A stretch of 64,000 nucleotides of DNA from Dicyema japonicum (GCA_011109175.1 RDEW01000007.1:743712-807711); one strand, 5' to 3'. Shown: positions 593 to 61,645, numbered from the stretch's first letter. Notes: generated from the letters alone by a model not told the origin. Program-made: numbers and translations.

Positions 593-3404
593 TTATAATT
601 TTAAATTGTTTCCGATAATTAGATGATTATTTTTTACACAATATTTATTCAAATAAGATATTTCTATTAATTAATATTATATTACTTTTCAGTCTCATGT
701 TGTCTATTAAATTGTTTTCCCATGTTGCCAGTAATATGTTGTAATAACCCGGAGATTGATCAAAAAATTTCAAATATTTGTTCGAGTCCTCACTTGGAAG
801 TATTCTATCAAATTCTCCCTTTCGGTTGAACTCGTCCTCACTTTGGATGAGAATCCTCGCATCGTCTGGTGTCAAGTCATTTATAATCGAGTTGGTGTTC
901 TAAGTAAAGGCGCTTCACTACTTTTTTTTCTTGCCAATTTTTCACATAGTCAATATGTTTGTGTTTTTCTTCGCAGGTGAGGACAGACCGAAACAATCTC
1001 TCGTCGAACATTAAATGAGAGTGATTTCTGGCAATTGATAGCAGTGAATACCGATCAAACGTGCACGACATGGACCTAGTTAGTGTTCTGTCATTCAAAT
1101 TAGGCAACATCCAGCCGGCAATGTTGAACATGTCCCTTACGATGAGTTCTTTCAGATTAGCATCCAATTGGGAGGTTGAATGTAGACTGGGATAACAATT
1201 CAATCACCTTGGGGATATATTTACTTCCAACAGCCACGGTTTTAATTTCGAGTCTAAGATAATGTCAAATCCGTAAAGTTCATGCACAGAGTACCTCGAC
1301 ACACCAGTGCTTCTTATGGCAGCATTAATGGAGTTTTCAGCACTAAAACATGTTTCAGAAAGGAACCTGATCACAGTTTTTACGACAATGTCATATATTT
1401 TTTGTTTGATAACGTCTGGATTAATATACACGGATATATATCTCCAGAACTGATCAAGACTCCATTTGTCGCTGTTTACATCAAAGTCGAGGTCATTACT
1501 CCCATTGGGCCTGTAGTTGGAGTTCTTTTTGTTGACTGAATAGTTTGTCAGGTGAATAAAACGGTTTTTAACATCATTTTGAGAATATCTGGGATAATAC
1601 CAAGCTTACTTTTCCGATGCAAAGCGAACAAGCCCAGATCTATGAACGTAAATGCGAAGGGGGTTAAAGCAGGAAATATACACGTAAATTCGCAAATCAA
1701 ACTTTTTTCCGTTTATTAAAAATGGGTCGGATATGTATCTAACTGTAAACTGAAAAATACCTTTGAATTATCAACGCACTGCTTTTCGATTATATTTTGT
1801 AACCCCTGAACAACCCTTATGCCTATTCCACGTGCTGACGCTGGCTTTGCGTTATATAATCCTATACTGGCTTTAATATCCATTTTGAGTTCTTTTTGCT
1901 GTCCATTAACACAAAGTCGTAATCTTTCGGGAGACAATATGTTTTGGGGAAAAAATTGTATTCTTCCCCAAATTTTAAATAAGCCTTCTTTAGATTTCTA
2001 GACAGCAAGTCCTTCCTCCCCAAATTGGAAGCGCCGGGAAAGTGGTTCAACTACGGAGAAACGACAAGTTAACTTTCTGGTATTTCAAGAGCAGTCGGTA
2101 TTCGTTGGCTTTAATTTGTTTTCCGAAGTATCCTATCCATTTTTTGTTATCTAAAATGCCCAGTAAATTGTACCGCTGGAAAAATGGAAATTTGACCGAA
2201 GAATAGCGGCTTTGACGATATTTGGAGTCAGGGAATCTAATTTCCACCTCAACATCTTATGAAGAGTTGGTTCTAATCTTGGAACTTGAATATCTTAGGT
2301 ACACAAACCTCGATTTCCTGATAATACAAAATTTATTGTGGGGGGAACATTAGCGAATAAGCTTTCAGTTAAGGCGGATACGTTATAGCTTTGTCTTCTC
2401 TGAGGATTTATGCTGATATATGAGTTCTACCGTACATATTTTTAAATACTGATATGCTTCTCCCGTTTCTCAGGGGGTAATAAAAACTAAAACGACTGAC
2501 GGCTTAAAATATAGTTATATACTAACAACTATCGCTTTCATCGTCACTTTCAAAGTCCTCTTCTTTGTCAAGTTCCGGTTCCCTTTCTTTAAGGCTAACA
2601 TCCACACTTGCTCTATGTTCATCCGTGATTTTGTGGAAATCCTCAACATTAATAATCTCATTATTTTTGACTTCCTGGTGTTATTGAGTTACTTACACTG
2701 ACTTCAATCGATTCATTGAGGAGATCAGCGTTTTGTGGTCTCTTGAAAGCTGAGGGAGACTCGGGTAACGATCCCACCAATGAGATTGTGTTTTCTCGTA
2801 CAATGTCGACTTTATATACAGGATCTATGAAATAATTACAATTTTACTTGAATTTAAAACTTCATTTTGTTTTTGGTAAAAATTGACGTTTCTGATTCTC
2901 TCGGGCAGTTTTGGCGATGTTGTTGTTCCGGGAAGACGCTGGAATCGAGAATAACGCCGATCTGCACTCGAACTGACTTCTGGCGGTAACTGAAGTCAGC
3001 TTTTTGAGCGAATTTTTAAAATCTGAAATAATTAAAAATTAATTATAAAAACCTTTACTAGACTTTATAATATTTCTATCTGAGATAAAATGGTGGGTTT
3101 TATGATCTCGTCTGTCGATCGGAGTCATTTTATGTGGTTTGCAAATTCCACACGTGGACGAGGCCTTTTGCTTAAAACTGTGACATTCGGCATCATCTCC
3201 TTTGTGTACACTGTGAATTTTGACTGCACTTATATCGAACGATCGAAGAAAGGGATTTTCGGAAGTACTCTTGGCTATAATAGTAAAATATTGATTACGC
3301 GTGAATGTGTCGTCCCTTGTGAATTTATCCCCAGTTTCAACGTAATTTTGAATAATCTTTTGGAGGTTCTTGGCAGTGATTGGACTATTAAATGGACTCC
3401 ACAT
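593..3404 (-). CDS. TTLL4: Tubulin glutamylase TTLL4-like, multi-exon
   Basis: The spliced translation contains SLFANVPPTINF, LRWKLDSLTPNIVK, NHFPG...GRKD, WILKPPASARGIGI, KFDLRIYV, HLTNYSVNK, ELYGFDIILD...PWLLEVNISPSLHS and LTPDDARILIQSEDEF. GT-AG introns are 21-24 nt (e.g. 1187-1207, 1343-1366). The start codon and one junction near 1780-1805 are uncertain. Confidence 0.9.
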
Positions 3405-4155
3405 TTAAAATGACCTTAAAACATTAACTGTTGCTATGATATGCGTAACTAATTTTAATAACATAGGAACATAACGGTATTCACTAAATTTGTTACAACA
3501 TTAAATCAATATTAATCAATTTTAAATTTTAAATTTGTCGATAACAATTATGGTACTTTCACTGGAAAAAAAACTTATTATGGGTTTTTGGCATTTTTAT
3601 TAATATATTGTGTTTCCCTGGGTTCTACTTATTAAGGAAGCGGATTTGCTGTATAGTGTTAATTTCGGTACAGAGCGTTGAATGTCATGCTTTGATGTTG
3701 AAAGCCTTCACCGGAAAATTAGAATTTAATTAGTAGAAATAATTAAAATGCATGTAATTATTAAATTCCAAATGATTTATCACAAATTAGTTGACCTCTT
3801 CACCAAAAAGTTCTGCGTCACGGTCTTCACTGTACGTGGGCAGCTTAGCTCCAAACATTTGATGATACTATTTGGTGTAAAGCCTTGTAAAACCGCTTGG
3901 GGTTAATTCTGACCAATGCTCCTTTTCTTTTCTCATCAGGTGAAATAAGTCGCTGAAAGAGTGGCATAGCAACTTGTGTGAGTGTCAGGGACATTTATAG
4001 ATAATCAAGGAAGCACTCTGGTCCATTAATGTACGTAAATATACCTTTCTGTCTTTGTTTTCTTATATAGGCTCAGATATCTGTCATGAAATTTCTTTGT
4101 CGATTATTTTTCTGTTCTTTCAAAGTTGAATTTTATATTCATTTTCGATGAACAT

Positions 4156-4361
4156 GACGAGTGACGCCGTCATCAGTGGAGTCTCACTGCGGAACTGGAT
4201 TGTCTAAAAAGGACCCACACACAAGAAAAAGAAAATAGAAGTGAAGATCATTCCTTGGTTCTACGATTAGTTAAAATTAACTGTTCTTTACTTAAATAAA
4301 GTGTGTGTCCTGCCTATGCGGAGCTAATACCACGGCTCCGTGAAAAAGGCTATTATTATTA
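4156..4361 (+). mobile_element. 5'-truncated tRNA-derived SINE copy with 13-bp target-site duplication
   Basis: It matches the 3' part of the SINE at 28395-28718 and ends in a (TAT)n tail. TTTCGATGAACAT flanks it at 4143-4155 and 4362-4374. Confidence 0.85.
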
Positions 4362-4469
4362 TTTCGATGAACATAATTAATTGTGCTTAGAATGAATTGT
4401 TTTATTTTAACTACAAAAACAGTTAACAACGACTATAAGTTCCTTTCAGTCAAGAATGGCCGCCCTCAG

Positions 4470-4830
4470 AATTAAAACGCATTAACACAGACGATTTGCA
4501 AGGAAATGCGCTCAATGAACCAGCTCTTTTCTTTCATATTTTTTTTCCTCCTTGCAATAAGCGGTCCGATACGGCTCAGCAAGGACAGTCATCTGCTTCC
4601 AATATGTCCTGATGTTTCCACGGCGATTGGATCAAAAGTGAACTGTCAACCGAGATATTCATATTTCTTCTTTACAGTCTCAGCCCTTTCCGATGCCGAT
4701 CCTGGGTGAGTTTTGTCATTGAAAAGTTAAATGGAGAGAGGCCATCAGCACAGATGGCATCCCAAACGAAATATCTACCGCTTTTATATGGAAAGAGAGT
4801 TGTATCGACAGTTCTTTTGTTGGCTGGGAG
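4470..4830 (-). mobile_element. Degenerate CRE-clade non-LTR retrotransposon 3' fragment
   Basis: VWDAICAD and FDPIAVETSGHIG resemble the restriction-like endonuclease region of ORF 33123..34178. Confidence 0.7.
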
Positions 4831-7348
4831 GCTCTGAACGTGAAATCTGGTCGTCATCCGATAGCGTTCCAAGGGAGGTGCATGGGAATGTTATGAGTCA
4901 TGTACCACTTTCGTTCGTCGAAGAAGCTAGACATGTTAGACGATGCTGGTAAAGTTCAGGTCTTATTTCATCAATAGTTTTTGACCATAATAGTTTACCC
5001 CACTTACCGAGCCACGCATGCTACTGGTTCAGCATGCGATCCGTTAATGTAGCGTAGGTTCTTAGGAGGTCCATGTCGAAATAACCAATGCTTGGTTAAA
5101 GTCGTCCTCTGTGCAAGCGACTTCAATGAGGAATGGTTGTGAAACACCCGTTCATGTGCACTTCTTACTCCAGAGAATCTCGTTTTTATGGCGTAGGAAC
5201 GGAAAGTCAGGGAGAAGATCGTTCGCTCTCAGACGGGTGCCAAACAAGGAGACCTGTTGGGACCCCTACTATTCACTTTAGTGACCGACGACGTCACACG
5301 TGAGTCAGTAGCTAAGATATTCTGAGCATCAGGTGCTCACGTTAGTTTAAATGTAAACTTCCAATTACTATGGGTGGTCATCAGTCTGAGATGAATGTGG
5401 CATCTCCTGCCTTTTCGTATGCTTCAAGCTTCACATGTGAATCTTACGTTACTCCTCGAGATATCTAGAGTCAGTTGGATTTCCATCTCTGATCTTCCTG
5501 GGTAAAAATTCTCCCATTTTCACATGGTGGATCTCTCTTTTTGATGAGACGTTCGTACATTCATTAACTGCTTCATCATTACATCATCTGCTCATTCTGA
5601 TTGCTAAAATCCCGACTCCATCAAACGGAGAAAACTAAAAAAATACTCATCTCTTCCGCTTCGTCCCAATCGGCTTCAAACTTGGTAGTTAATACTTAAG
5701 ATTGTCCTGGGGTGAGTTTTTGTTTCCTTATTTCTTCCACTCAAACTCATCAGCAAGCAGCTTCCCCCAATAGCATGTCATCCGTCGATCGTTCAAATGT
5801 CGATATCAGTTTCCGTGTGACCAATCAATATTCATGTTCCACTTTAATGATCTCAGAGATTTTATCGATTACAATGCTCTGAGTATATGCTCGTTTAGGA
5901 TCATCCACTTTATTGATTTATTGGTTTATCAACCCCAGACTTACACTCTTTGGTATCCCCATCACAAACAGTCACAACTAATTAATCCAAGGAAGGAACT
6001 CAAGAGAGAACGTCAGTTTGTGCCAACCAAATCCATCCTCTAAAGGTGGAGTAGTAGGTTCGTCCTCTTCCATTTTCATCACACTTTCTACCGCCGAGGA
6101 CATCGATCAAATACATCCTCCAAAAATGAAGAAGTAGGTTTGACCTCTTCCAGTTTATCACACTTTCTACATCACTTCACCTTCAGCGTAAGAGTTTTGA
6201 TAAAGGTAGGTGGATCATCCCTTTCAACAACTATGTTGTGTTAGAAGGACTCTTCGCCTCACGGTGATCTGTTGACGAGAATTGACCTTCGTTGAACACT
6301 ACTATATTCAGTTTAGCACACTTATGTACTTCTCCACTCTGATTTGCGTTATGGGCAATCGAGAAGTGATCCCAACTACGATCAAAATGATCTTTTTCTT
6401 CACTTCGTCAAAAACGAGACATAGTCGTATCCACTTGAATCTCAACAGCCTCATTAGCACTATCAACTGTAAAAATGAGTTTTCAACTTCCTCAAATTCC
6501 TTATCCCGCATTGCGGGCGAAGATGGAGGTGTATTCACCTCACAACTTGGTTATGGTAACAGTTTTCTTGGTGGAGTTCAAGTGGTAACAATTAACCCTA
6601 CCATTTTTTAAATGCTGTAATCTTGAGTCTGACATCATTTCTACTCTAATCCGATTGAGTGAAGAAATATTCTCTCACTCTACCTTTCAAAGTTGGTTTC
6701 TCTGCTAGTTTCACATCCTCTCCGATCGAATCCCACAGACAAATATAATACGATAAACCAGTAGATAAACCAGTACTGAAAAAATTAAAAGTACAAATTC
6801 TCCATTAGCTGATTCATTTACATGGAGATGTGGCTGGAAATCTAGACATAACAATACTTTGCATTTGTTCCCATTATTGAGACACATCTAAAGACATCTC
6901 CACGCATATAAACTAACCAGTTCTCCCACGAAAAAGACAACCTACCCACAGAAGGATTCGTTATTACCATTGAAACAAAGAGAACGCTCGTTACCCATCC
7001 TGTTTAGCTTTAATTTCTTGAATAGTCATCCCCATCCAAACTTAGACCAGAAGCACACAAGATGCCCTAACCTATGACCACATGTCAGATCCATACAAAA
7101 AGGTTAGTCAACAGTGATTAACAACAAATGTGTGGTTCCATTGCATCCTCGACACACAAATTCCAATGTCGACTAGGTGCCGGATATTTGAGAGAATCTT
7201 AATTGTAATCTGGGGAATAGCCACGCAGTCGGCTGAATGTTGTATGATCCTCGAATTGGTTGTTTAACGATTTTTTAAAATAAAAAAACTTGGACAAAAA
7301 AAACAAAAATGAAAAGTAGTGGACTGAAATGTAATTACTAATTAAAAA

Positions 7349-7918
7349 TCAATTATTTTTCCCGCCTTCCCTGCAAATGTTGAAGGAAAGAATGTCCACG
7401 ACGGATCTCCCATCAGAAGATATCACACGTCCTCCGTTAGGGCTCTCGCTCACATAGTTAAGATCCTTCAATGTCTTCAAGGAATAACGGGCGACACTTC
7501 GAGATCCCTTGCAGAAGTGAGAGGGACGACTCCCCCGCCTCTGTTTAGCTGCAAATCAGACCCAATCTTACAGCCATAGATCATTTGGAATCTCTTTAAA
7601 CCAATCGGTCTCTTAGTTCCGTAAAGTTTGAGGAGCATGGAAGCTGCGATGGACAGAATAGAGTACCTGTGCGAGTAACGAACCAATCAGGATCCATTGG
7701 ACTGAGTTCCTTGGCGTTACTGGTTTTCACGTAGTTCATACAAACAGGGACCTTGAATTTGTCGTTTCTACAATATCCCTAAGAAAGTAACTTTTTGATG
7801 TAGTCAGCGATAGCCTTTACTAATAGGTCCTGATCCACATCCTTTCCGCTGATTGCATGGACTGCTGACAGATTCTGGATTATTAGTAAAATAAAACATT
7901 TATGACTGAAGAGAACAT
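7349..7918 (-). CDS. RPS19: 40S ribosomal protein S19 (eS19), 4-5 exons
   Basis: Removing introns 7768-7791 (24 nt), 7644-7666 (23 nt) and 7549-7571 (23 nt) gives KDVDQDLLVKAIADYIKKNDKFKVP...KELSPMDPDWFVTRTASMLLKLY...IYGSKQRRGSRPSHFCKGSRSVARYSLKTL...GGRVISSDG. The first two introns sit at the same codon and phase as in vertebrate RPS19. The first exon (ATG 7918, intron 7875-7906) is tentative. Confidence 0.9.
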
Positions 7919-8279
7919 TACACACGATAAGAAAAGACCACGTTTTTTTTTAATTTTTTAATTTAAATTATTAAAAAATATTTAATTAATTATTAATTTT
8001 TAATACTAATTTAAACATTCTTGCCCTCACCAACTCTCCTCCAATTTTCTAATCGTTCGACTATATTTTTTTCAATTTCCTAAAAATAACACGAGACAAT
8101 ACATATTTGAGATCTACTACGTCATACTATCGTCGATAGTAATATAAATTAATATTTAACGATACCGATTAATTCTAAGCCTTCTGATTGGCTTTTGATA
8201 ATACTATCATGCTTTCCGAACGAATTCTCAACAGGAAATCCACATAAAGGTAGTATTTATTGATAAAAATGTCATACAG

Positions 8280-8540
8280 CGGCCACTCTGACTGGATGGC
8301 TCTCCCTCTCAGGATGGTGATCGAGACTCGCTCAAAGCGCTCACGAGGATCTCCTGTTAAGATGATCATTTTCTGTCACTTCTGAAAAGATCGAATTGTT
8401 CGAGAATGGAGGGGTGTCCGGCAGCGTTCAAAGCTCGCTTAACAACTTCGTTCAGGACGCGTGTCTGGGAGATCTGCCTACACTCTTCCTGCACGAGAGA
8501 GGGTCAATCTGATCTCCGCATCGGTATGGACGCGGCACAC
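8280..8540 (-). mobile_element. Degenerate CRE-clade fragment
   Basis: DPLSCRKSVGRSP, NEVVKRALNAAG and ERVSITILRG resemble the C-terminus of ORF 33123..34178. Confidence 0.6.
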
Positions 8541-8909
8541 AGAGAGATAATATACTCGCAGTGAACATTCGGTTAAGAGTGCGTTGTATTTAACTTTGCT
8601 AAAACATAGTTATGGGTATTGCAGAACATTTGGATAATTTTGCACAATTTTCCTTTTATTTTGTAAAATCAATAAATTCAGTTATTACGACAAGGTCTCC
8701 ATTACGGCGTTGAGCAGTCCCTCATGATCACAAGTCCAATGTTGTGAAAGAGCCATCGTGTCATTCTAGAATTGGTGGCGAAAATGTAATTTTTATTATA
8801 TTTTAAATCGCTGAATTTTTGACCTCCTCTAACTCGGGGACATTTTGATATCTTATTTACTAAGAATTAACATTTAATAAAGGTAACCCGTAAAATCATC
8901 ACAAATCTA

Positions 8910-9200
8910 CCACCAGATCTCCACAGTGGTCAGTCTCTTGTGTAGACTGAGCGATCTTTCCGAGTAGCTGAGAATGTAAAGGCGTCGTCAAAGGATAACC
9001 CCTGGAAGTAAATGTCTTGAGGTTCATTCTGAAATGAACATTAGGTACCCTCTAGGCGTCGCTAAAACTTACAGAATTGATTTACCACTCTTGCCACCCA
9101 TTTCCGAAACTCTTGGGACATGTCCAAAGAACTGCCATTTCGCCGAAGTCACTCTGTTTCCAGTAACTCTGTAGAGCTCGTACCACATAACGCTAATTAA
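8910..9200 (-). mobile_element. RTE-like LINE 3' fragment
   Basis: WQFFGHVPR and FQGYPLTTP resemble the RTE C-terminal RWxxFGHxxR and RGRPxTT motifs. Similar fragments lie at about 36640-36900 and 61100-61250. Confidence 0.5.
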
Positions 9201-10089
9201 AATATTTCCACGCACCATAAATATCATGAAATCTCAACTTATTTTAAATATAAATTGTTAAATTAAAATTTTTTTTAAATAAAAGTAATTTAAATTTAGT
9301 CTCTTGTAATGTCCAACTTGCAGCCAACCAATGTTTCGGCTTTAATAAAAGTATGATTTAAATCTCAAAATTAGTGTTCCCGATGGTCTCTTTTGCTACT
9401 AGGAGTAGGTTACGGAGTAATCAGGAACAGTAAGATTCATTGAGTCCATAAAATAGGGTACCTCTGCAAGAACGAGGTTGAACCTCAGGAAATTTTGGCA
9501 AGGTTCGACAAGAACGAAAGATCAGAGACGAGGAGACCCGAAAACATAATGCACGAGGTTGTGTCTTTACTTATCGGCAGTTGAGATCGATAATCTAGCC
9601 ATTCAGTTGGGAATGATGGAGTCCCCTGGGCAGATGCCTGAGACTAACCCACTTCTCAAGTAACTAATTTACTTTTCTAACCAACTAATTAAATTCGTTC
9701 TTTATTCGCTAAAATGTTGACACTACCACGTGTCCTAATTAGGTGACTTTACCCTGAGTAATATCACTTTAGCGTGAGTCTGAATGGCCCCGACCTAGGA
9801 TATTGCCTAGATCTTACTTTGAATTGTCTGTATTGTTCAAAACGCCATTGAAGATCTCACGTGCTTCAACGGGACTATGTGGTTTTCCATTGTGCTGGAT
9901 GATTCTAACCTGGTGTCTGTGATCCACCTGTCCAAGAAGGCGTCCAATTTAGGATGCGTGAACTGGGGTCACTTAGTTGAGGACTTTCTTTTCTCTAACC
10001 CGTGGTCCTGGGGCAATAAATAACCAGGAACCTCTGTGAGAGAGTCTTTAGTCGCTCATTTAGTCCTTGATGTGGTAAGATACTGAGAT

Positions 10090-10584
10090 GGGTAATCATA
10101 TTCCTCCTATACGATGGACATTTGTATTCAACCACTCAACTTAGAAGTTAGTTTAATGATATTAGGTGGATGATCAATTAGACCTGCACCATAATTCTGT
10201 CTCAGGATTTTCTAACATATGTAGAAAGATATTTCAAGTTGACTTGCAAATATAAATTCTATCACACGAAAATCAAAAGGAATTATGTCCAATCATCTAT
10301 TCATCCTTGTTGACCTTTGTAATCGATTCCACTAACCTCATTTACGTGTTTTTAATTTTCCGTACCCTGTTTAACATGGTTTATTAACAATTTTTTATTT
10401 CCTGAGCTATTTCTTATCTAAAACTCAAGACTATCACAAAGAGGCGTCAAGACAAATTAATTGGGCAATCTCAGCTACAAGCCTGACTTTCCTGAATCTT
10501 AAATTTGACTCCAAGGAATTGGGTCACATTGAGCTCCCCGAACGGACACAGTTGAGTACATTCTCCCTATAGATCAATGTGCAC
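10090..10584 (+). pseudogene. Inverted innexin-derived sequence (partial pseudogene)
   Basis: 10501-10584 is the reverse complement of innexin CDS 11919-12003 with 6 substitutions and 1 indel. Upstream peptides (HIPPIRW, DFLTYVERYF, KFYHTK) weakly resemble the innexin intracellular loop. Confidence 0.65.
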
Positions 10585-10719
10585 CAGCGATCCTATCGTT
10601 TTCTAAAAGTGCCGAAGAAAATGTTATTAAGTAGGAAGTTTTTTTAAAGATTAAGCCTATCTGACTAGCTACCTCAGAACAAAAATTGAAAAAGACATTG
10701 TTAAATCAAGAAAACTCAA

Positions 10720-11566
10720 TAGACATTATCCCCCTGTATATCTCTCGTCAATAATTGACTTTGATACCCTTGTCAAGAGGATTCCACACTCCCTCTCGAA
10801 TTCTCTACTGACCAGATTTCGGTCGCGCACGTGAAGTCTAGAGCCGTAAAAACCTGCTGAAAGTCATTTGAAGATTTACTGGTGTCGCCTAACCAACACC
10901 GTCGTATTTATTTGTTTCTGGAAAAGTCGTCCAAAAGTGGAGTTAAGATACCTTTCTGGATGATGAATGCGTTCGTATTGGAATCTCACCATGACTCGTT
11001 TGAATGTCTGTGTGTCATCCATGCCGATGCGAGAACTAGATTGACTGTTTTATCTCGCATCCACTCTCCTGCAGGAAGAGACACGTGGTCGTGAACAAAG
11101 TCGTTAAACGAACTTTGGATGCCTGACTCCCTTCTATGCTCGAATAAGTCGGCCTTTGCAGACATGACGGAAGAAGACCTCCCTTTAAAGCCGGGAAACC
11201 TCTTGTCTGGGACGCTCTTACACCGACCTTCGCTCCTATCAGCCTACTTCAGAGTGCCTATAGAGCCCGCTCGACCGCTATAAAAGCCAAAGTTCGAAAA
11301 AATATGATGACTTACCCGATGCAATGCAGTTTATTCTTCTCGCTGTGAAGACTTCAGATGCCATAAGACCATCGAACAATGGAATTTCTTAATTGATTTG
11401 GGAGTCAGAATTCCGAGCGTACGGACGATAATCCCTATAATATCATTTTCTTCAATTCGTCAAATAATCCTTGATATTGAAGGGATCAGTCTTAAATTCA
11501 ATTTTATTGAGTGTCCATACTATCCGCTAATATGGTTAAGTCTCTGATTAATGATGAAGTCCACCT
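10720..11566 (+). mobile_element. Degenerate CRE-clade insertion between 36-bp direct repeats
   Basis: Remnants of HPLSCR, GRDT, LVWDA, KYDDL and FILLAVKTS motifs are present. AATTGAAAAAGACATTGTTAAATCAAGAAAACTCAA flanks it at 10684-10719 and 11567-11602. Confidence 0.65.
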
Positions 11567-11598
11567 AATTGAAAAAGACATTGTTAAATCAAGAAAAC

Positions 11599-51259: not shown

Positions 51260-53277
51260 ATGGAAGCCAACCTAATGCTTTCCGGCGATGTGAACCCAAA
51301 TCCTGGACCTCGAAAACCCATTATTTTGATTCAACTAAACATAAATGGAGTGAAACGAAAGATCCTCGAACTCAAAAACCTCTTAAAAGGTATAATACTG
51401 ACATTTGCCTACTCCAAGAAACAAGACTGACTCCGTCTTCTTCCACTCCCGTCTTCCCAAACTATCACGTTACAGGCGCGACCGCACAGCTGGGGGGTGA
51501 TGGACTGCTTACCCTTATCAAAAATGAAATTCCGTACGCAAACGAAACTTTTGTCAACCTCAAGTCTCCCGTCGAATATATTGGTATTTCAGTCAAGACA
51601 AGCATCGGAAACATAAACATGTTGAATGTGTATGTGCCATCGCTCAACTCATGCCCAAGGAATTCAGGTTCTCCCTGTCAGACATCGACAAATCAAAAAA
51701 TATGTTACTCTGTGGAAACCTAAATGCATAGCATCCGACATGGTTCGAGAACCAACTATGCGATGTCAGAGGAAACCAATTGTTATCGAATCTGGATGAC
51801 CTGATAATATTAAACAACTCTACATTCAATACAAGGACTCACTACAGAGCGAATGACAGGACATCGCCCCCCGATCTCACTCTTGCCTCACCAAACATCG
51901 CAACATTAACAAAATGGACAGTACTATACGAGACCAGCAGTGACCATAATCCCGTTATGATTACGTTTGAAGGAAGAGTGTCAATTGTAAAGAANCTCAC
52001 CAAACATCGCAACATTAACAAAATGGACAGTACTATACGAGACCAGCAGTGACCATATTCCCGTTATGATTACGTTTGAAGGAAGAGTGTCAATTGTAAA
52101 GAAACCTGTTTTATTTACCGACTACAAAAATGTCGACTGGAAAAAGTTCTCAAATTTAGTCGACGATTATCTACTTGACTTTCATTTATCCAATTTCAAC
52201 TCCATCGATAAAGCACTACACTATTTTAATGAGTGGTACGCGAGGGAATGGAAATTTGTATTAAAAGAAGGCCACTGACCATCAAGAAAGAATTCTTCCC
52301 CCAGAGCCGATCCACTCATAAAAGAAAGAAACTACCTAAAAAGCCTCAAAAAACAATCCTGGAAAACAAGATTGAGAATTCGTACATTAGAAAGAGAGAT
52401 CAGGAACAATGCAAAGAAGAAACAAGAGAAAGTTTGGAAAAACCTCATGTCCAATTTAAACAAGCAGAACTCCCTTACAAAAATGTGGAAAACACTTAGA
52501 AGCTTTAGTAACGCTGACAACCCGGCCACACGTGATGAAATGGAAAACAAGATCTTCCTAAACAAACTTATGAAGTACTACTTCTCCACGAGTTTCATCC
52601 CACACAAGAAATTCGAAGGTCCATCCATCCTAGCCCTCAAACCTAAAAGAGCCACCTCCCCGATTGTCCTCTCTGTGAGAACGTACAGAATATGGTCAAA
52701 AGTCGACTTATTCTTGTGGTCCGGATGGAATACCTACAATAGTTCTGAAAAACATAGGCCCCTATGCTATCATGGCCCTCAAAAAAATTTTCAACTTTTC
52801 AATCAACGAAAATTGTATTCCTTCCATATGGAAGCTATCAAACATACGACCAATTCTGAAACCCGGGCAACCAAAGGGATCACCAGCCTCATACAGACCA
52901 ATATCTCTCCTATGTGTTACATCAAAACTTTTGGAAAAGTTGATTCTTGAACTAATCAAACCATACCTTCCTGATGCACCTTTTCATCACGGATTCAGAA
53001 AAGGACACTCCACAGAAACGCATCTTACAAATTTCATCAAGGATGGACTAAAGCGCAAACCTCATCAGAAGTCTTTGTTATGCTCCATCGATATAGAAAA
53101 GGCTTTTGATACTGTCCCAAGAAAGTTTTTGACAAGGAAGATCTTTACGTCAAAAATTCCAGACAACCTGAAAATCTGGATTGCAAATTTCCTAAATGGA
53201 AGAAGAGGAAAAGTAACTGCTGGAAAAACTAGATCAGTGACCAAGTTTTTTCCAAATGGGGTCCCTCAAGGATCTTG
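51260..53277 (+). mobile_element. Ingi/Vingi-like LINE (2A-like motif, APE, RT), degenerate
   Basis: LMLSGDVNPNPGP, QLNING, LLQETR, PDLTL, SDHNP, SYRPISLL, DIEKAFD and NGVPQGS. Confidence 0.85.
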
Positions 53278-54736
53278 AGCTTTGGGTAAGATCGAACCTT
53301 CCCGGAAAAAATCCTCAGTCCATCTAAGAGAAAAGCATTTTACGGCTCTCCAGCTAAACATCAATGGAATTAAAGGAAAAATCAGAAGAACTCCGCTCAC
53401 TCCTGGCTTGTCAAAAGATTAACGTTGCGATGATTTAAGAGACCAAACTCTCTTTAAATGACCCTACCCCTACATTCCCAAGCTATCAGGAAAGACCGTA
53501 GAGAAAAAAGAGGTGGAGGTCTGCTCACTCTATTAAAAAAGAACTTGAAATGCAGAGAAATCTCCTCGGAAGTGAGGAAACTTGCTGGGGATGATGTAAC
53601 AGAAATAATTGGAATCTCGCTCGGGACAACGGAAGGAAGACTATTCCTTGTGAATATCTACGATCCGCCTCCTGGTTCTTGCCCGAAGAGCTATGATATG
53701 CCAAACATATCAAGACTGTCTTCATCATCTCCAGGGATTTGAATGCGAAGCATCCCTTATGGCTGTCAACTCAACTAGCTGACATGAGAGGGAAACTATT
53801 ATTATCGCAAACGGACTCCATAACGATATTGAATGATCCATCGATAAATACAAGGACACCACTGAGAGAGATAGATAAACTTACCTCACCGGACGTAACA
53901 CTCTGCTCATCGTCGCTTTCATCAAAAATTGATTGATCAGTCCTCTACGAAACAAGAAGCGACCATAATCCAATTGTGGTGAAGATCAAAAGAGAGGCCA
54001 ACGTGAGGAGAATTCCTAGCAGCTACAATTACAAAGGTGCTAACTGGAAATTGTATCGTGAAATCTCAGAAGATAAAATGAAGAATTGTTACTTGGATAG
54101 CTTCAGTTCTCTTGAGAATGTCATCATCTACTTTACCCAAATTATCTTGGAAGCAAGATCAAGGACTACAGTCTGACCTCAAAATGGGGCAGACCCAGGG
54201 GTGGGGCACCTTCGGATTTTGGGGCACCTTTTTTCAAATCAACATTTTGGCAGAATAAAATGAAAAATCAATAAAAAATTATGGAAATTTTGAGGCATCG
54301 TAAAATCATTTATTAACAATTTTTAAGATAATAAAATTATAATAAATTAATTATTTTTTGTTTTATTTTCAATTTTGTTGTGGTTATGGATTACGAAACT
54401 AAATTGAAAATTGCTAAAAAATTTGGATGGTTGTGCGAGAATCGATTAAATGCATGTTCCGAAAAGTCAGCAGTCACTCTATTTACTAAGAATAGAAAGA
54501 TGGGAACGCAAACAATTGATGTCACGTTAAATGGAGTACCTATACCACAAAAGAAATCGCAGAAGATACTGGGAGTAACTTTTGATACTTTCCTCTGCTT
54601 CTCAGCCCATGTGGAATCTATCATATCAACTTGTGCAAAGAAGATCAATTTTGTAAAGGCCTTCCTTTGGAACTGTGGAGGAATGTATCCGCCAGGTATC
54701 GGGACCCTCTACAAGCAGTATGTCGAGCCAACGATA

Positions 54737-55357
54737 NNNNNNNNNNNNNNNNNNNNNNNNNNNNNNNNNNNNNNNNNNNNNNNNNNNNNNNNNNNNNNNN
54801 NNNNNNNNNNNNNNNNNNNNNNNNNNNNNNNNNNNNNNNNNNNNNNNNNNNNNNNNNNNNNNNNNNNNNNNNNNNNNNNNNNNNNNNNNNNNNNNNNNNN
54901 NNNNNNNNNNNNNNNNNNNNNNNNNNNNNNNNNNNNNNNNNNNNNNNNNNNNNNNNNNNNNNNNNNNNNNNNNNNNNNNNNNNNNNNNNNNNNNNNNNNN
55001 NNNNNNNNNNNNNNNNNNNNNNNNNNNNNNNNNNNNNNNNNNNNNNNNNNNNNNNNNNNNNNNNNNNNNNNNNNNNNNNNNNNNNNNNNNNNNNNNNNNN
55101 NNNNNNNNNNNNNNNNNNNNNNNNNNNNNNNNNNNNNNNNNNNNNNNNNNNNNNNNNNNNNNNNNNNNNNNNNNNNNNNNNNNNNNNNNNNNNNNNNNNN
55201 NNNNNNNNNNNNNNNNNNNNNNNNNNNNNNNNNNNNNNNNNNNNNNNNNNNNNNNNNNNNNNNNNNNNNNNNNNNNNNNNNNNNNNNNNNNNNNNNNNNN
55301 NNNNNNNNNNNNNNNNNNNNNNNNNNNNNNNNNNNNNNNNNNNNNNNNNNNNNNNNN
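54737..55357. other. Assembly gap (621 N)
   Basis: Run of n characters. Confidence 1.
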
Positions 55358-55513
55358 TTCAAACTCTTTTTACTGATCGAAGTGATAAATAGACTTTCGT
55401 TCATAAAAACCTTGCGACTTCTCATATCTGTATTAGTTGATAACAAATCTAAAAAATTAAAATTTTAAAATATAGATTTACTTGTGTATTATTTATATAT
55501 ATAACTTGGACAT

Positions 55514-55587
55514 CATTTATGGGAATTGGGTCAACATTTATGGGAATTGGGTCAACATTTATGGGAATTGGGTCAACATTTATGGGA
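55514..55587. repeat. 21-bp tandem repeat, about 3.5 copies
   Basis: Unit CATTTATGGGAATTGGGTCAA. Confidence 0.95.
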
Positions 55588-55739
55588 TTGAGTGTATTAT
55601 TATTAATAAACCCCTAAATGGGGCACTTGGTGTATACCCAAACATTTCTTAAATTCGTCAAGGGAAGACGGCCTTGATTAAAGAAAGAAATCAGCTTAGA
55701 ACAAGAAATGACCCAGCGTCTTGTAGACCGATGTCACTA

Positions 55740-55836
55740 CAGTACGACCTCGGTTTGGGGCACCATTTTTATCATAGTGCCCCAAAAACCGAGGGTGGAC
55801 CATCCCTGGGGTCTGCCCCAAATCGGGGTCGTACTG
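55740..55836. mobile_element. Tigger/pogo-type MITE (97 bp) inserted in a LINE RT
   Basis: TIRs CAGTACGACCTCGGTTTGGGGCA and TGCCCCAAATCGGGGTCGTACTG with a TA duplication. A related end starts at 54169. Confidence 0.85.
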
Positions 55837-58681
55837 TACTATGTTCCATGACAAAAATCCTGGAGAGGCTTGTGCTCGGAAGAATAAAGGAATTTTTACC
55901 AGAGAAGACTTTTCAACATGGATGCAAAAATAAGAGATCCACGTCTACATACTTGCAAACATTGACCGACTTCATTCGAGTCGGATTCATAACCAAGCCG
56001 AGACACTATTCTATCGAGAAAAATATTTCAATCGGAGATCCCTGGGAAGCTAAAGCTTTGGATCACTAACTTCCTAAGTGGACGAAGGGGACGTGTTTGC
56101 CTCGGAGATCTGAAATCAATCTCACGGCTCCTCCCCAACGGAATCCCTCAAAGATCTCCTTTATCCCCTGCTCTGTTTAACCTCTTTCGGGCTGATCTCC
56201 CGACTCTTGAATCTGATAATGATGTTCGACTTGCCTAAGATATGATATTGTGTTGGCTTCGCAAGATCAGGACATCCAGAAGGCCGCAGAAACAATACAA
56301 ATTAACCTGGACAGACTTAATTCATGGATAATGGAAAACCGGCTCGTGGTGATTGCAGAGAAGTCATCTACGTCACTATTTACCTCTGACAAAAGATTGG
56401 GAAGGAAGACAGTCACCTTGAAGTTAAACAAGGTCGGCATCCCTTTTAACAGATGTCAAAGGATCTTGGGTGTGACAATTGATATGCATCTCTGTTTGAC
56501 ACGTGGAAAAGATTTTATTGAATTGAGAGAAGAAACTGAACGTATTTAAAAGTTTATCGGGAATATGGATAAGTGGTACTCACCCAGTCTTGATGAACGT
56601 GTACAAACAGTACATCGAGCCATGCTTCTCATATACATGCGCCTCGTGGGGACCAGTATTGACAAGAATCAAACACCACGTGATTTCACTCATCAGGTAG
56701 ATGTCATAATGGACCATTACGCAAAAGTGGGTCACATCGATATGAACAAATGCTCCCGTCTATGCAAATTGAAAAACGTTTAAACTCTTCAAAGGATTCA
56801 GTACGTCTGATGTCGAAAAACTCATCAAAAACGCCAAAAACTACATTTAAAGCAAATGTGAATGCAAGGACTCAAAGCAATAACAAACATAATTTCTGTG
56901 TCAATCAACAACTGCCGAATTCCTGCAATATGGAAAAATCTAAAATAATCCCAATCTTGAAGCCCAAGATAGATCCTTCGGATCCGAGATCTTTCAGACA
57001 AATTTCACTACTATCTGTAGAATCGAAAATTGTTGAACGTGTTGTATTGAAACTAATATCGGAGTATCTTCCCTTTCCTGATTTTCAACATGGCTTTCGT
57101 CCACAATACTCAACATCAACACATCTCTCTACCCTAACTCAATATATCGCTGATGGTTTTAACAATTATGATCATCCCAAACTGACTATCCTTTCATCAA
57201 TTGACCTAACCATGGTTTGATCGAACATCAAGGCGCCTAAGTAACAAAATTCTTGTATCTCAAATTTCTCCACGTCTTCAGAGCTGGCCAACAAATTTCC
57301 TCTCTGGAAGAATTGGTAGAGCTGAAATTATGTCATGTCTATCTCACTACCGACTCTTTCCAAATGGAGTTCCCCAAGACTCCGTTTTGTCACCCTCTTA
57401 TTCAACTTGCACCTAAGCGACATTCCAACCAATTCCAAGACACTTCTATTGATGCGGATGACCTGATTATTGCTTCTAAAGACATAGACGTTAACGAAGC
57501 AACGAAGGATGTTCAGAACCACTTGAACACTCTTGAAGAGTGGCTTGGAGCAAACCACTTATCCCCCTCTCCATCGAAATCCACCGTCACTGTATTCACG
57601 TCCAACCGCCGCCAACTAAATTTTCAACCAATTTTAACAATTCATGGACAAACACTCACCGCTACGAAACATCCCAAAATACTTGGAGTTGTTTATGACC
57701 AACTATTAACATTCTCTAAACATGTGGAGGATCATTGTACAATGGCCTCTCGCAAGATCAACCTACCTAAAGCTGTGTCAAGACATTCCCTTGGCCAAAG
57801 CAAAGAATCCCTAACCATCATATATAAACAATTCATTCGAACAACTATTAACTATGCAAGTCATTGCTGGTCAACCCCTGCCTTTCTTGCTTCTATTGAC
57901 AAACTACAAAATGTACAAACATCGCGCTCAGGACAATTACTGGATGTCTCAGATCAACTCACCTATTTGAATGTCAAATCACCTACAACGTTCCTCTACA
58001 ATGCCAGGACTGACCGATCCATGGGAGCGACCAACATCTTCTGCGTCCTACTTAATAGCTGCTGGCCTCCTACAAGTTAGTGAGGCTGGGGTTACTTAAC
58101 TAACTAACAGCAAATACTAACAAATAGTAAGGTTCCAACTGCAGAAGACAGTGTTATTTGCTGCATGCGATGGCATTTCCCAGGCGATGTGAAAATCATT
58201 TCAGTTTCCGGGATCCATGAACCGCGTCGCAACCGCATTCCCGATTTTGATGGATCCTTTACTATTCTTCCAACCGCTCCCGGGGTTTCGCCCATTTGTT
58301 TTCCTAACGATGGTGTCAAAAATGTTGAATCATTACGAAGCCGAAAAACTCCTATAAGGTTATGGTAATTATGCACTGGACGCATCCGTAGCTGATGGTT
58401 TGATGAATATTAGAATGATCTATCAGTTTCTACTGCTCAATGGACTGCAAACGTAAGCTTGGCGCTCATCCCGTAGCCACTACCGGGCAAACTAATAAAT
58501 AGTTGCTTGCAAGATAGAGAAGGTGGGTCTGTTGGTCACGATTGTCTGCAGTTTCCTTCATAAGACCACATGAAACCCAGGATATGAACAAGTCCACGGA
58601 AAACATGGATAAAGTAATAAATAATTACAACCATTAATATATTTAAAACAATAAATTTAAATACAATTATCTCGTGCTGTT

Positions 58682-59238
58682 ATGCTTATTCTCCGTCGAG
58701 CTGAAGTAATTTAATAATGACTGTGATAGGTCAACGACTTGCTTAAAATACAGCACTGTAATCTTCTGTGCCTCCCTGAGAACTATCAAATAAAGTACTA
58801 CATGTATCATCTCCTATCGTGGCCTCAGGCATGGTGGGTTGTCATTTCTTAGATTTCATACGTCGCGGAATCTGACGGAGAAATTGTCGGCTATTCTCTA
58901 GCCAAAATGTTATTGTTTTGGAAATAGTTTAGGGACGAGGAGACAATAAATCCACCACGTGGTCATATTACGTCCTTGGCAGTCCAAAGATCTCACAGGA
59001 AGTCAGGACTGGCTCGTAAACTGATGGAGTTGTCATCGCGTGCAATGGGTGAATCATTTGGCGCAAAGGAGTTAACTCTCCACGTGCGAATCACGAATAG
59101 AGCTGCTTTCAATTTATACAAAAATACTTTGGGCTTCGAGTTGGCTTATTTAGAAATTCTAGAGTGACTCATTTGGAGCCCAAATATTATGCTGACGGAG
59201 AGGACGCCTATTCGATGACGAAAAATATTTCTTGTTAA
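58682..59238 (+). CDS. NAA10: N-alpha-acetyltransferase 10 (ARD1), 5 exons
   Basis: Removing introns 58706-58729, 58829-58852 (GC-AG), 58909-58932 and 59140-59162 gives [32 protein letters not shown]...IVGYSLAKM...GHITSLAV...LHVR...[14 protein letters not shown]. Confidence 0.96.
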
Positions 59239-59998
59239 TTTCATTTTAATTTCCCGCCTTATAAATTCATTTGTAAATCTTACTTTATTTTCCCGCTTTG
59301 AATAATTTTAATGCTACTACGATTAATCCTTTACTTTTAGTGCTCTTTGGGAATCCCAGCCTATATTAAACAGCCACGTGTTCTTATTTTTGGAGGATTT
59401 GTAGAGGTGTGGCCCTCTGTTTTATTTGACCCTGTGACTTTAATGCTTCAATGAATGGAGGTTGGTATAGAAAGAGGAATGAATCTGACGTTCTTTTGGA
59501 TTACTAAAGAACGAAATTTCTTGTTTTGTTGAATGGAAGTGGAAACTCTCTACAGTCCACATAAAGTTGTGAGAATTCGTGCCAAACTCGGTACAATTAA
59601 CCTTCTGGTTAGGTTTAAATTTCGTTTATGGGGATAAAATGGTTTCAATTCTATAGACTTGGGAGACATTATTGTAGGAGGTGAAAATCACTAGGTCTTT
59701 TCACCGCAGTGAGATGAATTTTGACCAAAACTTATTTCATAGGTAGACTTGGGAGACATTATTGTAGGAGGTGAAAATCACTAGGTCTTTTCACCGCAGT
59801 GAGATGAATTTTGACCAAAACTTATTTCATAGGAAGAAGGTTTTATTTATTTACCCCCGTTCCCTTCAAGTGAAGAAAACCATTGACTAACTGGAAAGTC
59901 ACACCCAAGAACGGACGCTCCCAGAGATCCGCCAGGTGTATTTGATGTGGTGCAGGACTCGAAGACGGAAAAGTAACTAGAATTCTGGTCGTATAGAA

Positions 59999-60118
59999 CA
60001 GTGGTCCTCGACCTTTTTGTTGCCGAGAATTTTACCGCGATTTGGTGGTAGATTGTTTACTCGTACTAACAACAGCCCGGTATAAATTGGTCTACGGCCC
60101 ACTGGTTGGAGACCACTG
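59999..60118. mobile_element. hAT MITE (120 bp)
   Basis: TIRs CAGTGGTCCTCGACC and GGTTGGAGACCACTG, with 8-bp TSD GTATAGAA/GTCTAGAA (one mismatch). Confidence 0.8.
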
Positions 60119-61645
60119 GTCTAGAAGACAGAAAGAAAAATGTGTGAATGGAGATTGTCCGATTCTGTTCAAATAAGAATGTTAACATGGTGGTCGGTTT
60201 TTGTTTTAATTCACGAAAGTGGCGGGGATGTATGTGATTCACGTATCAGGAAAATTTCTGACCACACCAAAATAGTTATAATTTTATATCGTCCTTTTCA
60301 GAAGCAACCGAGAATTACACTTTCGTTGTCAGAATCATGGTTATTCCGGAATTAGGGGACAACAATAGTTATAATTTTATATCGTCCTTTTCAGAAGCAA
60401 CCGAGAATTACACTTTCGCTGTCAGAATCATGGTTATTCCGGAATTAGGGGACAACTCTAAACAACTGAGATAGTTTAGCGTCACATATTAGAAATGCTT
60501 CGATTCTCCTAGTTAGTTGAAGTTTAATTTACTCTGCTCCTTATGTTCTCTTGTTCTACTAGAGTAACTTCATACTATCCATCTGTCTCAGGATTAACTC
60601 CTGGGAGATCAATGCTAACGCTTGAATGCTCCAAGGTGATTCCCTATCTTTAATCTTTTTCCGTTTATCTGGAGGCTGTCAGTGTGATCTAGGATCAAAG
60701 TATACCCCCTCCTCAGTATCCAGAACTGACATATATTTGAGTAGTGGTAACTAAGGGAGAACTTGGAGGAGACAGATTTTGTAACAGTAAAGAAGACAGA
60801 TCTTGTAAGACTAAATCAAATGACGAAGGCTGAAGTTTAAAAGTTGGGATAATTACTTGGAGACCAAGAAGATGTACAAATAGGCAAATCCAAGCACTAT
60901 TAGCATCACAGAAACTACAATCGTAACGGGTGAGATACTTGCACGTGTCTTTAACTTTGATCACTACAATGAATATGTCTTTCTAGTGTTATTATACAGC
61001 TGTGGGACTTGGGGAATCAGCCAGAAACAAAATGAGAAACAAAAGCGTGAAAATGTGGGCTCAAGAAGGATCTACTTAATATGTGAGTCCCAGCCATGGA
61101 AAATGTGAAGTGGGAATTATTTGGATATAACATACCTTGAGTGCATTCGCTGATATCGGATATGAATCATACACACTCTCTGTCGCAGTTCGCGAGGTCC
61201 TAAGGAGCTAAAAATGAAGCTATAAGACTTATATGACATTCAAGAAAGGAATCTTCGAAGGAACCAAGATGATATCAGACTGACAGGATTTTCCGTATTG
61301 TTGTAAAAATGATCACTTTTCTCTTTTAGTTCTGATGTTCAATAAAAGAACAGTCATGGAGATAACCACTCAATGTTCTGTTAATTTCTGACTATTTTCT
61401 GCTTGATATTGAAATTCAATAAAATAAAATCGCTGCGACGTCTGACTACACTAAAAAGCCACGACTCACTTTTATTTAATAAAAATCATTAAAAAAATTA
61501 AATCCTTTCTGAATCCTCTAATAATAATAAATTAAAAAATAAAATGCGTGATATTAAATTATACTTATATCGATTTCCGCTCATCGGCCGTTATTCAGTG
61601 ATATCAGAATTCAGATCGTTCGAGGTTTAAATTATTTTAATTAAC

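Follow-up and report, generated by a model that had tools for sequence, protein, structure and literature searches.

Background

The hexamer CACGTG is the core of the E-box read by the Myc/Max/Mxd/Mlx, USF and TFE bHLH-ZIP network, and E-boxes regulate genes from promoters and enhancers, without genome-wide over-representation. In Escherichia coli, very-short-patch repair, which requires a C5 methyltransferase, leaves an excess of CCWGG and a deficit of CTWGG. The USS and DUS of Haemophilus and Neisseria are non-palindromic 9-12-mers tied to natural transformation. Genome-wide iterated palindromes comparable to the one considered here have, to our knowledge, been described only in bacteria, where they have puzzled genomicists for over 20 years. 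HIP1 (GCGATCGC) is the highly iterated palindrome of cyanobacteria, and a role in chromosome structure has been proposed for it (Xu, Lawrence and Durand 2018, PMC5861425).

Dicyema japonicum is an octopus parasite with a small genome. Its CACGTG sites, studied here from a 64-kb window (the whole stretch of DNA that was analysed), resemble HIP1 in that an exact short palindrome is hyper-abundant genome-wide, inside and between ORFs and independently of frame, as neither a peptide nor a promoter signal. However, HIP1 is a bacterial octamer, whereas CACGTG is a hexamer of an animal nuclear genome, and its excess is about 3-fold across the genome and 5-18-fold within resident DNA, compared with 15-300-fold for HIP1. 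Moreover, the case for selection on HIP1 rests on between-genome conservation and periodicity, while that for CACGTG comes from one genome; no DNA methyltransferase was found in D. japonicum among the Pfam families searched; and CACGTG is bound by a family of eukaryotic transcription factors whose number is expanded in this species.

With E-boxes the sites share the identical core, a genome encoding many proteins with the matching basic-region triad, and perhaps a mild genome-wide preference for C/G flanks. Unlike E-boxes, they carpet gene bodies and non-coding DNA at roughly 0.5-1 per kb and fill about half of the synonymous opportunities. The oligonucleotide excess is visible at the DNA level inside genes, as with very-short-patch repair in E. 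coli, but the T-containing neighbour CATGTG is raised and no methyltransferase was found. As with USS and DUS, a short exact word is enriched in resident DNA, including coding DNA, and would be kept by a transmission or fixation bias, not by single-site function; we know of no comparable uptake process in any animal. The explanation that we tentatively prefer is a bias in fixation, pervasive but weak, towards the exact duplex hexamer, which would keep CACGTG dense in resident (non-transposon) DNA, coding and non-coding, with Max-type proteins as its putative readers.

CACGTG in the window

Direct counting gives 44 CACGTG sites in the window against about 8 expected (8.1 at order 0, and 6.0, 8.0, 11.0 and 26.7 with Markov models of orders 1-4), and the hexamer ranks first of 4096 at each order from 0 to 4. 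The observed/expected ratio, which the first-pass annotation had proposed to check against Markov models, is above 1 in the window at each of these orders. Its count of about 44 is confirmed and the sites that it listed recur at identical positions, with 13 in filamin (16610-25612) and four in 44.8-58 kb as it had counted. It had reported none in an intact CRE ORF or from 61.6 kb on, and none is found from 61.6 kb onwards, nor in the 375-codon ORF at 33051-34175, which has no Pfam family match and is possibly the ORF it meant. Its estimate of about 7 expected sites assumed roughly 36% GC, and the GC content of the window is 38.2%. The neighbour words, put at about 4-11 each, are slightly more frequent on the plus strand (CACGTA 10, CACGTT 14, CACGTC 6 and GTCGAC 12), with the order of magnitude right.

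The features of the window are presented in Table 1. Protein searches used single stop-free pieces, with exons left unjoined.

Table 1. Features of the 64-kb window and their CACGTG sites.
Feature	Coordinates	Strand	CACGTG sites	Basis
Host gene-rich DNA (TTL-like, innexin, unnamed genes)	1829..15617	.	14: 1829, 3151, 5297, 9727, 9858, 10828, 11082, 12137, 12398, 12979, 13846, 14123, 15098, 15612	Pfam matches TTL, innexin
Innexin ORF, 409 codons, one open frame	11602..12828	-	2, both in codon phase 2	PF00876, E = 9e-44
Sites within the filamin gene	16610..25617	-	13: 16610, 17886, 18649, 18722, 18965, 19063, 19137, 19920, 20228, 22273, 24534, 25125, 25612	PF00630 repeats in four distinct ORF pieces
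Mixed unique and repeat DNA	30380..41795	.	9: 30380, 30404, 30502, 36930, 37950, 39220, 40361, 40928, 41790	Direct count
Young 1-kb high-copy repeat with 375-codon ORF, free of CACGTG	33152..34187	+		At least 39 copies, 95-100% identical
Broken retroelement fragments (gag zinc knuckle, EEP endonuclease, three RT fragments)	44800..58100	+	4: 47690, 52529, 56500, 56677	Pfam
Assembly gap, 621 N	54737..55357	.		tblastn colinearity against LINE in L010
Sites in a unique host stretch	58956..60947	.	4: 58956, 59081, 59375, 60942
LINE 5' part (EEP endonuclease), high-copy family	61600..64000	+	None; four CATGTG	PF03372 match, 88 genome matches

By region, the window has 27 sites against 3.6 expected in 1-26057, 9 against 1.95 in 26058-44799, and 4 against 0.45 in the unique host stretch. 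In the retroelement block, 4 sites are found against 1.8 expected (P = 0.10), and two of them, 52529 and 56500, are common to copies in L002 and L010 and were inherited from the element families. Hence the density in host genes that had been described holds, with transposons at background level. The gap in this block is flanked by different, non-colinear LINE fragments according to tblastn, so ORFs running through the N are artefacts; its only effect on the counts is on the denominator of the transposon block.

Among all pairs of sites in the window, the flanks have at most 20 of 40 bases in common, which indicates that no repeat family carries the motif and agrees with the earlier impression that no flanking base is fixed. 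The flank logo presents no signal outside the hexamer, and the spacing of sites appears Poisson-like. An origin in adapters, misassembly, or a single repeat family or scaffold is refuted, with a probability close to nil, by the unique flanks, the genome-wide counts and independent sample described below, and one contig of read run X1 that spans 58083-61628 at single-copy depth. The summed read depth of the LINE that follows is about 350-900x the unique depth.

Genome-wide counts

In the whole D. japonicum genome, CACGTG occurs 21,851 times, compared with about 7,360 expected from composition and 4,535 occurrences of its reversed word, GTGCAC. An independent 107-kb sample of other scaffolds (13 stretches at 9 scaffold positions) contains 46 sites where 9-16 are expected, and CACGTG is again the most over-represented hexamer after Markov correction. 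These values rule out an excess restricted to this scaffold, one of the outcomes that the first-pass annotation had named as fatal to its proposal. The extended word CCACGTGG occurs 2,763 times genome-wide, against 147 for its reverse.

Codon-aware analysis

We compared the positions where the protein permits CACGTG with the positions that carry it, given codon usage. This codon-aware test of CACGTG is new here. The CDS samples were small, at 18.4 kb for host genes and 10.9 kb for transposon ORFs. In host CDS the motif is realised at 17 of 36 permissive positions, with 1.7 expected; this comprises 8 of 16 in the window (0.82 expected) and 9 of 20 on other scaffolds (0.91 expected). In transposon ORFs only 1 of 21 is realised (0.91 expected), and the difference from host CDS is significant (Fisher P = 0.0009). 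Given protein and codon usage, CACGTG ranks first among hexamers in host CDS, while at synonymous positions of transposon ORFs it ranks 1681 of 4092. The control palindromes GTGCAC, CAGCTG, GACGTC and GTCGAC are realised about as often as expected. For the filamin-gene sites, a synonymous shuffle gives 0.85 expected against 8 observed.

The excess thus persists after codon correction and uses all three codon phases, with realised fractions of 3/6, 7/19 and 7/11 in phases 0, 1 and 2; the filamin gene also has sites in each. Together with the dissimilar flanks, this excludes the single repeat family or codon pair that had been proposed as a trivial source: the excess in resident genes is independent of codon pair, phase, flank and repeat family. 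The odds of CACGTG in host genes are about 18-fold above the codon-usage expectation, equivalent to about 3 as a population-scaled strength. Host proteins have 36 permissive peptide positions, compared with 35.5 +/- 5.8 under amino-acid shuffling, which indicates that proteins are not bent towards the motif and the force is weak. In other words, the bias takes about half of the synonymous opportunities in host genes, leaves the number of permissive peptide positions unchanged, and leaves transposon ORFs untouched.

Non-coding DNA is enriched as well. DNA without an open frame of at least 30 codons has 4 sites against 0.2 expected, and at the filamin sites 18649 and 18722 the minus strand has no open frame. 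CACGTG density is about 0.5/kb across all ORF-length classes and about 1/kb inside CDS; with gene bodies this dense, no concentration in promoters or enhancers was seen across ORF-length classes and CDS.

These data bear on a signal acting in RNA or translation, be it a pair of codons, a motif in mRNA or a splicing signal at CAC|GTG. Density is indeed highest in genes, and a few sites, such as 5297 and 25612, read CACGTGAGT and resemble 5' splice sites. Yet the three phases are used (3/7/7, which rules out a single codon pair), DNA without open frames is enriched too, and splice-like contexts occur at only a handful of sites, which rules out a splice-site origin. We consider an RNA-level signal barely credible.

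Methylation and neighbouring words

The first-pass annotation had suggested a methylation or repair bias and had proposed to look for acquired DNA methyltransferases. A system of the HIP1 or very-short-patch type, in which a site-specific methyltransferase acts with biased mismatch repair to restore the site, would suit a palindrome with a central CpG, and Elhai is said to have linked HIP-type palindromes to methyltransferases in 2015. Six-frame genome searches in which controls were detected found no match to the DNA methyltransferase families PF00145, PF01555, PF02384 and PF02086, although a missed gene is possible in an assembly with a BUSCO completeness of about 77%. MT-A70 matches are limited to two loci, the number expected for the mRNA m6A writers, which they presumably are.

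In addition, the observed/expected ratio of CpG (0.80-0.86) is similar to that of GpC (0.71-0.82) whether host CDS, transposons or bulk DNA is considered, with no CpG-specific depletion in any of the three. In the independent sample, none of the nine classes of one-step neighbours is clearly depleted (observed/expected 0.76-1.38), and CATGTG/CACATG stand at 1.38-1.51x expectation, as if sites decayed by CpG transition. Methylation is therefore unlikely as the cause, a regenerating system of this type is highly improbable, and the methylation or repair bias of the earlier reading is not supported.

Transposons and accumulation over time

A universal mutational bias would make CACGTG in all nuclear DNA through an error preference of replication or repair, so that density reflects DNA age. 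The motif is missing from young transposon copies, which is what one would expect of any slow process. However, no class of one-step neighbours is clearly depleted and CATGTG/CACATG are raised. Several LINE lineages also exist, with RT identity of only 30-40% between them. Given this diversity, we take the lineages to be long-resident, and the lack of a synonymous excess in their ORFs (the 1 of 21 above) would then argue against a universal mutational process, although these ORFs may lack the motif simply because the lineages are recent arrivals.

The LINE near-site 62894 is ancestrally CATGTG; none of 64 copies has gained CACGTG and 7 changed otherwise, a count of low power since the copies differ by only about 2% locally. 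A second near-site, 62227, was discarded as a gain test: it is ancestrally TATGTG in 57 of 58 copies and hence two steps from CACGTG, which makes it uninformative. Among the 40 of 572 variant rows listed for the LINE read-contig pile-up, none falls at a near-site. The proposal that the hexamer accumulates over time is therefore not borne out, as LINE ORFs are unenriched and the copies with no gains are too young for power, and we regard a universal mutational bias as very doubtful.

Among paralogue and repeat pairs at up to 82% local identity, 3 of 9 sites are conserved compared with about 1.2 expected, which is not significant and is dominated by one site of a 7-member family. Self-BLAST repeat masking of a 263-kb sample was dropped because paralogous HLH loci confound it. 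The closest innexin homologue in the protein collection is 27% identical.

Candidate readers

The genome has 37 HLH matches, and at least 14 of the 30 HLH loci examined keep the H-x3-E-x3-R basic region, the His/Glu/Arg triad that reads CACGTG. The closest solved structures in the PDB are Max, Max/Myc and USF. Five Max-like paralogues with 83-93% DNA identity lie on five scaffolds and, judging from their sequences, this family is recently amplified. The expansion of bHLH-ZIP genes that the first-pass annotation had proposed to look for is thus found. Its chromatin-binding mark is plausible given the triad-bearing loci and the amplified Max-like family, the link between motif and proteins being one of co-occurrence.

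The word CCACGTGG accounts for 12.6% of CACGTG sites genome-wide, compared with about 7.7% if the -1 base were distributed as at other CAC trinucleotides, which is the direction of the Myc/Max flank preference. In the local sample, the -1 base at CACGTG does not differ from that at other CAC trinucleotides (chi-square P = 0.42). CACGTG is probably read by Max-type proteins.

Selection, conversion or retention

Under the preferred fixation bias, the hexamer would be read as duplex DNA by an unusually large set of Max/Myc/USF-type bHLH-ZIP proteins. It would then mark resident chromatin with densely placed sites of protein binding, neither promoter elements nor methylation sites, and because of this binding, motif-creating alleles would be fixed slightly more often than motif-destroying ones. 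We lean towards selection on a collective binding function, rather than conversion bias, as the source of the fixation bias. Against this, the bHLH-ZIP link is one of co-occurrence only, some collective function would be required for selection to act on about 20,000 sites, some of them in AT-rich non-coding DNA, and a conversion drive predicts the identical pattern.

In such a non-adaptive drive, biased gene conversion or repair would favour the CACGTG allele in heterozygotes and the motif itself would be functionless; for instance, a bound protein could shield the CACGTG allele from breaks, so that cuts fall on the unbound homologue and the shielded allele serves as template for their repair. 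Resident DNA has a similar apparent strength whether it is coding or not, and the force, a weak one, is limited to synonymous sites. Transposon lineages, which are rarely homozygous at one locus for long, are unaffected, as allelic conversion bias predicts. The heterozygosity of D. japonicum is 1.24% (PMC6736024), and about 1.2% from the reads used here; heterozygosity this high implies frequent heteroduplexes, a point in favour of drive. On the other hand, known cases of conversion run in the opposite direction. At PRDM9 hotspots conversion erodes the motif, and we know of no conversion drive specific to a motif by which sites for a transcription factor accumulate. Drive is hence the strongest alternative, though an unlikely one.

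A further alternative is a retention or "self" mark, in which a CACGTG carpet read by Max-like proteins separates resident DNA from transposons during somatic chromatin elimination. The contrast between host DNA and transposons is strong, the reader family is expanded, and chromatin elimination is on record for dicyemids (cited in PMC6543705). Nevertheless, this is a special case of the preferred fixation bias with one added step, and we give it only a slim chance. Slimmer still is that of a cis-acting "keep me" mark, by which amplified Max-type proteins would cover resident DNA by binding to about 22,000 exact E-boxes and transposon-rich DNA without them would be discarded or silenced in the soma.

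Implications

A full-text literature search returned no animal case of an iterated palindrome and no paper on a CACGTG carpet. Given that the readers of CACGTG are well understood in eukaryotes and have apparently multiplied here, the purpose of an iterated palindrome becomes testable with standard tools. A DNA-level force determines the outcome at about half of the synonymous positions open to it in the genes of an animal, which matters for codon-usage models, gene prediction and transposon dating in the dicyemid lineage. If the "keep me" mark were true, an animal genome would have a system that tells self from non-self and is written in the DNA sequence.

Over-representation of CACGTG in the window and in the genome

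CACGTG occurs 44 times in the window, and every position listed in the first-pass annotation matched exactly. The expected counts are 8.1 from base composition and 6.0, 8.0, 11.0 and 26.7 under Markov models of orders 1 to 4, so the ratio of observed to expected is not near 1, and the word ranks 1 of 4096 hexamers at all orders tested, composition included. The neighbouring words, at 6-14 occurrences each, lie slightly above the annotated 4-11.

The enrichment is also not restricted to one scaffold. In the assembly of 67,542,437 bases and 377 scaffolds, CACGTG was counted 21,851 times, against a composition expectation of ~7,360 and against 4,535 for GTGCAC, the reversed word used as control; CCACGTGG has 2,763 occurrences and its reverse 147. 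An independent sample of 13 stretches at 9 other scaffold positions (107 kb read) yielded 46 CACGTG sites against 9-16 expected, again at rank 1. A single repeat family or codon pair does not account for the excess, given that any two sites in the window agree at 20 or fewer of their 40 flanking bases and that coding sites fall in all three phases. The CACGTG excess is a real, genome-wide phenomenon at the DNA level.

The published Dicyema japonicum genome comprises 67.5 Mb in 377 scaffolds, with a GC content of 36.7%, 49% repeats, 5,012 genes, a mean intron of 38 bp, a heterozygosity of 1.24% and a BUSCO completeness of ~77% (PMC6736024). Chromatin elimination in the soma of dicyemids is cited in PMC6543705.

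Distribution among host genes and transposons

The features of the window were located by protein searches with single stop-free pieces only, exons never being joined, and by copy number and read depth.

Features of the window and the basis of their assignment
Feature	Position	Strand	Basis or remark
TTL-like host gene	0.9-2 kb	minus	protein search
Innexin host gene	11602-12828	minus	protein search
Filamin repeats, host gene	16-26 kb	minus	protein search
1-kb repeat	33152-34187		at least 39 copies, 95-100% identity
Tandem copies around single N	37367-37910, 41921-42175, 51887-52103		
Block of broken retroelement pieces	44.8-58 kb		protein search
Unique DNA	58.1-61.6 kb		read contig at single-copy depth
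LINE, 5' part	from 61.6 kb		family with 88 scored matches

Against composition expectations, CACGTG occurs 27 times versus 3.6 in host (non-transposon) DNA at 1-26 kb, 4 versus 0.45 in the unique DNA, 4 versus 1.8 in the transposon block and 0 versus 0.3 in the LINE; host and transposon densities differ (binomial P = 0.002). The annotated regional counts hold: thirteen sites within 16610-25612, four in the block, none from the LINE onward and none in the 375-codon ORF at 33051-34175. This ORF, which lies inside the 1-kb repeat, is without a Pfam match, and the label "CRE" proposed for it is putative. Of the four block sites, those at 52529 and 56500 are common to copies elsewhere and were therefore inherited, not gained in place. 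The summed read depth of the LINE family is several hundred times the unique depth.

At the gap 54737-55357, the left flank matches the C-terminal RT part of a LINE in locus L010, sampled elsewhere in the genome, while the right flank restarts in an earlier RT part and is followed by a third RT fragment; the flanks are not colinear, and therefore do not form one reading frame. ORFs running through the N of this gap were rejected as artefacts, since its two sides belong to separate frames, and the only effect of the gap is a shorter transposon block. The single N at 37639, 42048 and 51995 each stand between tandem copies of 108-272 bp that are 96-99% identical, and look like assembly gap-closing artefacts. 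Read contigs from three runs lack 90 and 93 bases at 59654-59743 and 60271-60363, where the assembly presents tandem duplicates (~99% identical); this reflects either assembly duplication or a heterozygous indel. In another sampled locus, at L011:6606-7199, a histone-fold domain spans residues 69-194 within an open frame of 198 codons, which gives it an unusual N-terminal extension.

Choice among synonymous spellings

Confident host coding pieces of the window (7.8 kb) contain 8 CACGTG sites, in phases 0/1/2 of 1/3/4, where 0.85 are expected after shuffling of synonymous codons and 0.87 after shuffling of codon order (P < 1/2000). We then counted as permissive all positions whose encoded peptide allows a CACGTG spelling, and as realised those where CACGTG is present. 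Host coding sequence realised 8 of 16 permissive positions in the window (0.82 expected) and 9 of 20 in Pfam-confirmed pieces from other scaffolds (0.91 expected), whereas transposon ORFs realised 1 of 21 (0.91 expected; Fisher P = 0.0009 for host versus transposon). GTGCAC, CAGCTG, GACGTC and GTCGAC came close to their expected realisation in each of the three sets. When protein and codon usage are taken into account, CACGTG is at rank 1 of 4096 in host coding sequence (17 versus 1.72) and at rank 1681 of 4092 in transposon ORFs.

The number of permissive positions in host proteins (36) is not shifted from that after amino-acid shuffling (35.5 +/- 5.8); therefore, the force picks among synonymous spellings and proteins are not reshaped. 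Under a reversible mutation-fixation model, the odds ratio of ~18 would imply a population-scaled strength of about 3.

Among hexamers that do not overlap CACGTG, CCCGGG is the next most over-represented in host coding sequence given protein and codon usage (9 versus 1.8, in window pieces plus pieces from sampled loci L002-L038), and it takes second place among the window's palindromes (8 versus 3.1).

Non-coding DNA and sequence context

In a six-frame classification, the DNA lacking any 30-codon open frame (6.4 kb, GC 25%) contains 4 CACGTG sites versus 0.2 expected, and that with a maximum open frame of 30-45 codons contains 10 versus 1.6, with a density of 0.44-0.63 per kb across all open-frame classes. 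The distribution of bases at -1 does not differ from that before other CAC trinucleotides (248 half-sites, P = 0.42); genome-wide, the CC..GG flank pair accompanies 12.6% of sites versus ~7.7% expected, a mild C preference. For the nine classes of words one step away, observed/expected runs from 0.76 to 1.38, with no class clearly depleted, and CATGTG/CACATG are raised 1.4-1.5-fold, as if CACGTG sites decay by CpG transition.

Methylation, mutational bias and the age of LINE copies

An acquired DNA methyltransferase, which the first-pass annotation had proposed to look for, did not appear: six-frame genome searches with positive controls gave no match to PF00145, PF01555, PF02384 or PF02086 in this assembly of ~77% BUSCO completeness. 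MT-A70 has only two loci in the genome (G000:C323:1432032-1432493 and C201:40150-40634, on two scaffolds of the assembly), as would be expected for the mRNA m6A writers, which they probably are. CpG O/E (0.80-0.86) is close to GpC O/E (0.71-0.82), both being alike in host coding sequence, transposons and bulk DNA. Because of the missing methyltransferase matches and these ratios, a methylation mechanism like that of HIP1, the highly iterated palindrome of cyanobacteria, or of the very-short-patch (VSP) repair of E. coli is unlikely.

Several LINE lineages have an RT identity of only 30-40%, from which we infer that they are long-term residents; they carry no synonymous CACGTG excess, which argues against a bias that works throughout the nuclear DNA. 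The LINE pattern is compatible with selection on resident DNA and equally with an allelic conversion bias escaped by mobile lineages. Methylation and simple mutational bias are disfavoured.

Within the window's LINE family, the family state at 62894 is CATGTG, and 0 of 64 copies changed to CACGTG while 7 changed otherwise; neutrality predicts ~0.3-0.6 gains and strength 3 predicts ~1-2, and the copies are too young for a decision between them. The family carries TATGTG at 62227, two steps from CACGTG. The window copy (61600-64000) is ~10% diverged from the family, with dozens of private changes, among them the one that made CATGTG from TATGTG at 62227; the other copies are almost identical at these two sites.

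Candidate CACGTG readers

PF00010 has 37 matches in the genome, and H-N-x-x-E-[RK]-x-R-R, a pattern with the His/Glu/Arg triad by which Max reads CACGTG, is present in 14 of 30 HLH loci examined. The best solved relatives are Max for locus L022, Max/Myc for L018 and USF for L023 (95% identical to L029), and L017 is a bHLH-PAS gene. The check for expanded bHLH-ZIP genes suggested in the first-pass annotation turned up a Max-like family: five paralogues (L022, L026, L033, L041 and L042, on scaffolds C112, C124, C314, C268 and C312) share 83-93% DNA identity over ~0.9 kb, a recent amplification. Three further Max-like loci (L024, L025, L021) are more divergent, and the triad is kept in all eight. 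From their co-occurrence with the site in this genome, bHLH-ZIP proteins are candidate readers of CACGTG. bHLH is absent from the genome paper's text (PMC6736024).

A dispersed 7-copy family (L018, L019, L027, L028, L032, L035, L039) carries a small Myc/Max-like HLH ORF followed by ~1.3 kb of common non-coding sequence at 78-95% identity, and 6 of 7 copies retain one CACGTG directly after the ORF. L028 and L035 have a degenerate basic region. In L027 a long open frame upstream reads in frame into the HLH (565 codons inside the locus; 932 aa as counted by the search).

Relation to known iterated palindromes

Literature searches joining Dicyema and CACGTG found no paper, and those on iterated palindromes in eukaryotes, or on an effect of CACGTG on codon choice, gave no relevant result; of the systems described, cyanobacterial HIP1 (PMC5861425) comes closest. 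CACGTG in Dicyema is an iterated palindrome in an animal, new for that kind of system, and it may be maintained by weak selection on a protein-binding mark or by a conversion drive.
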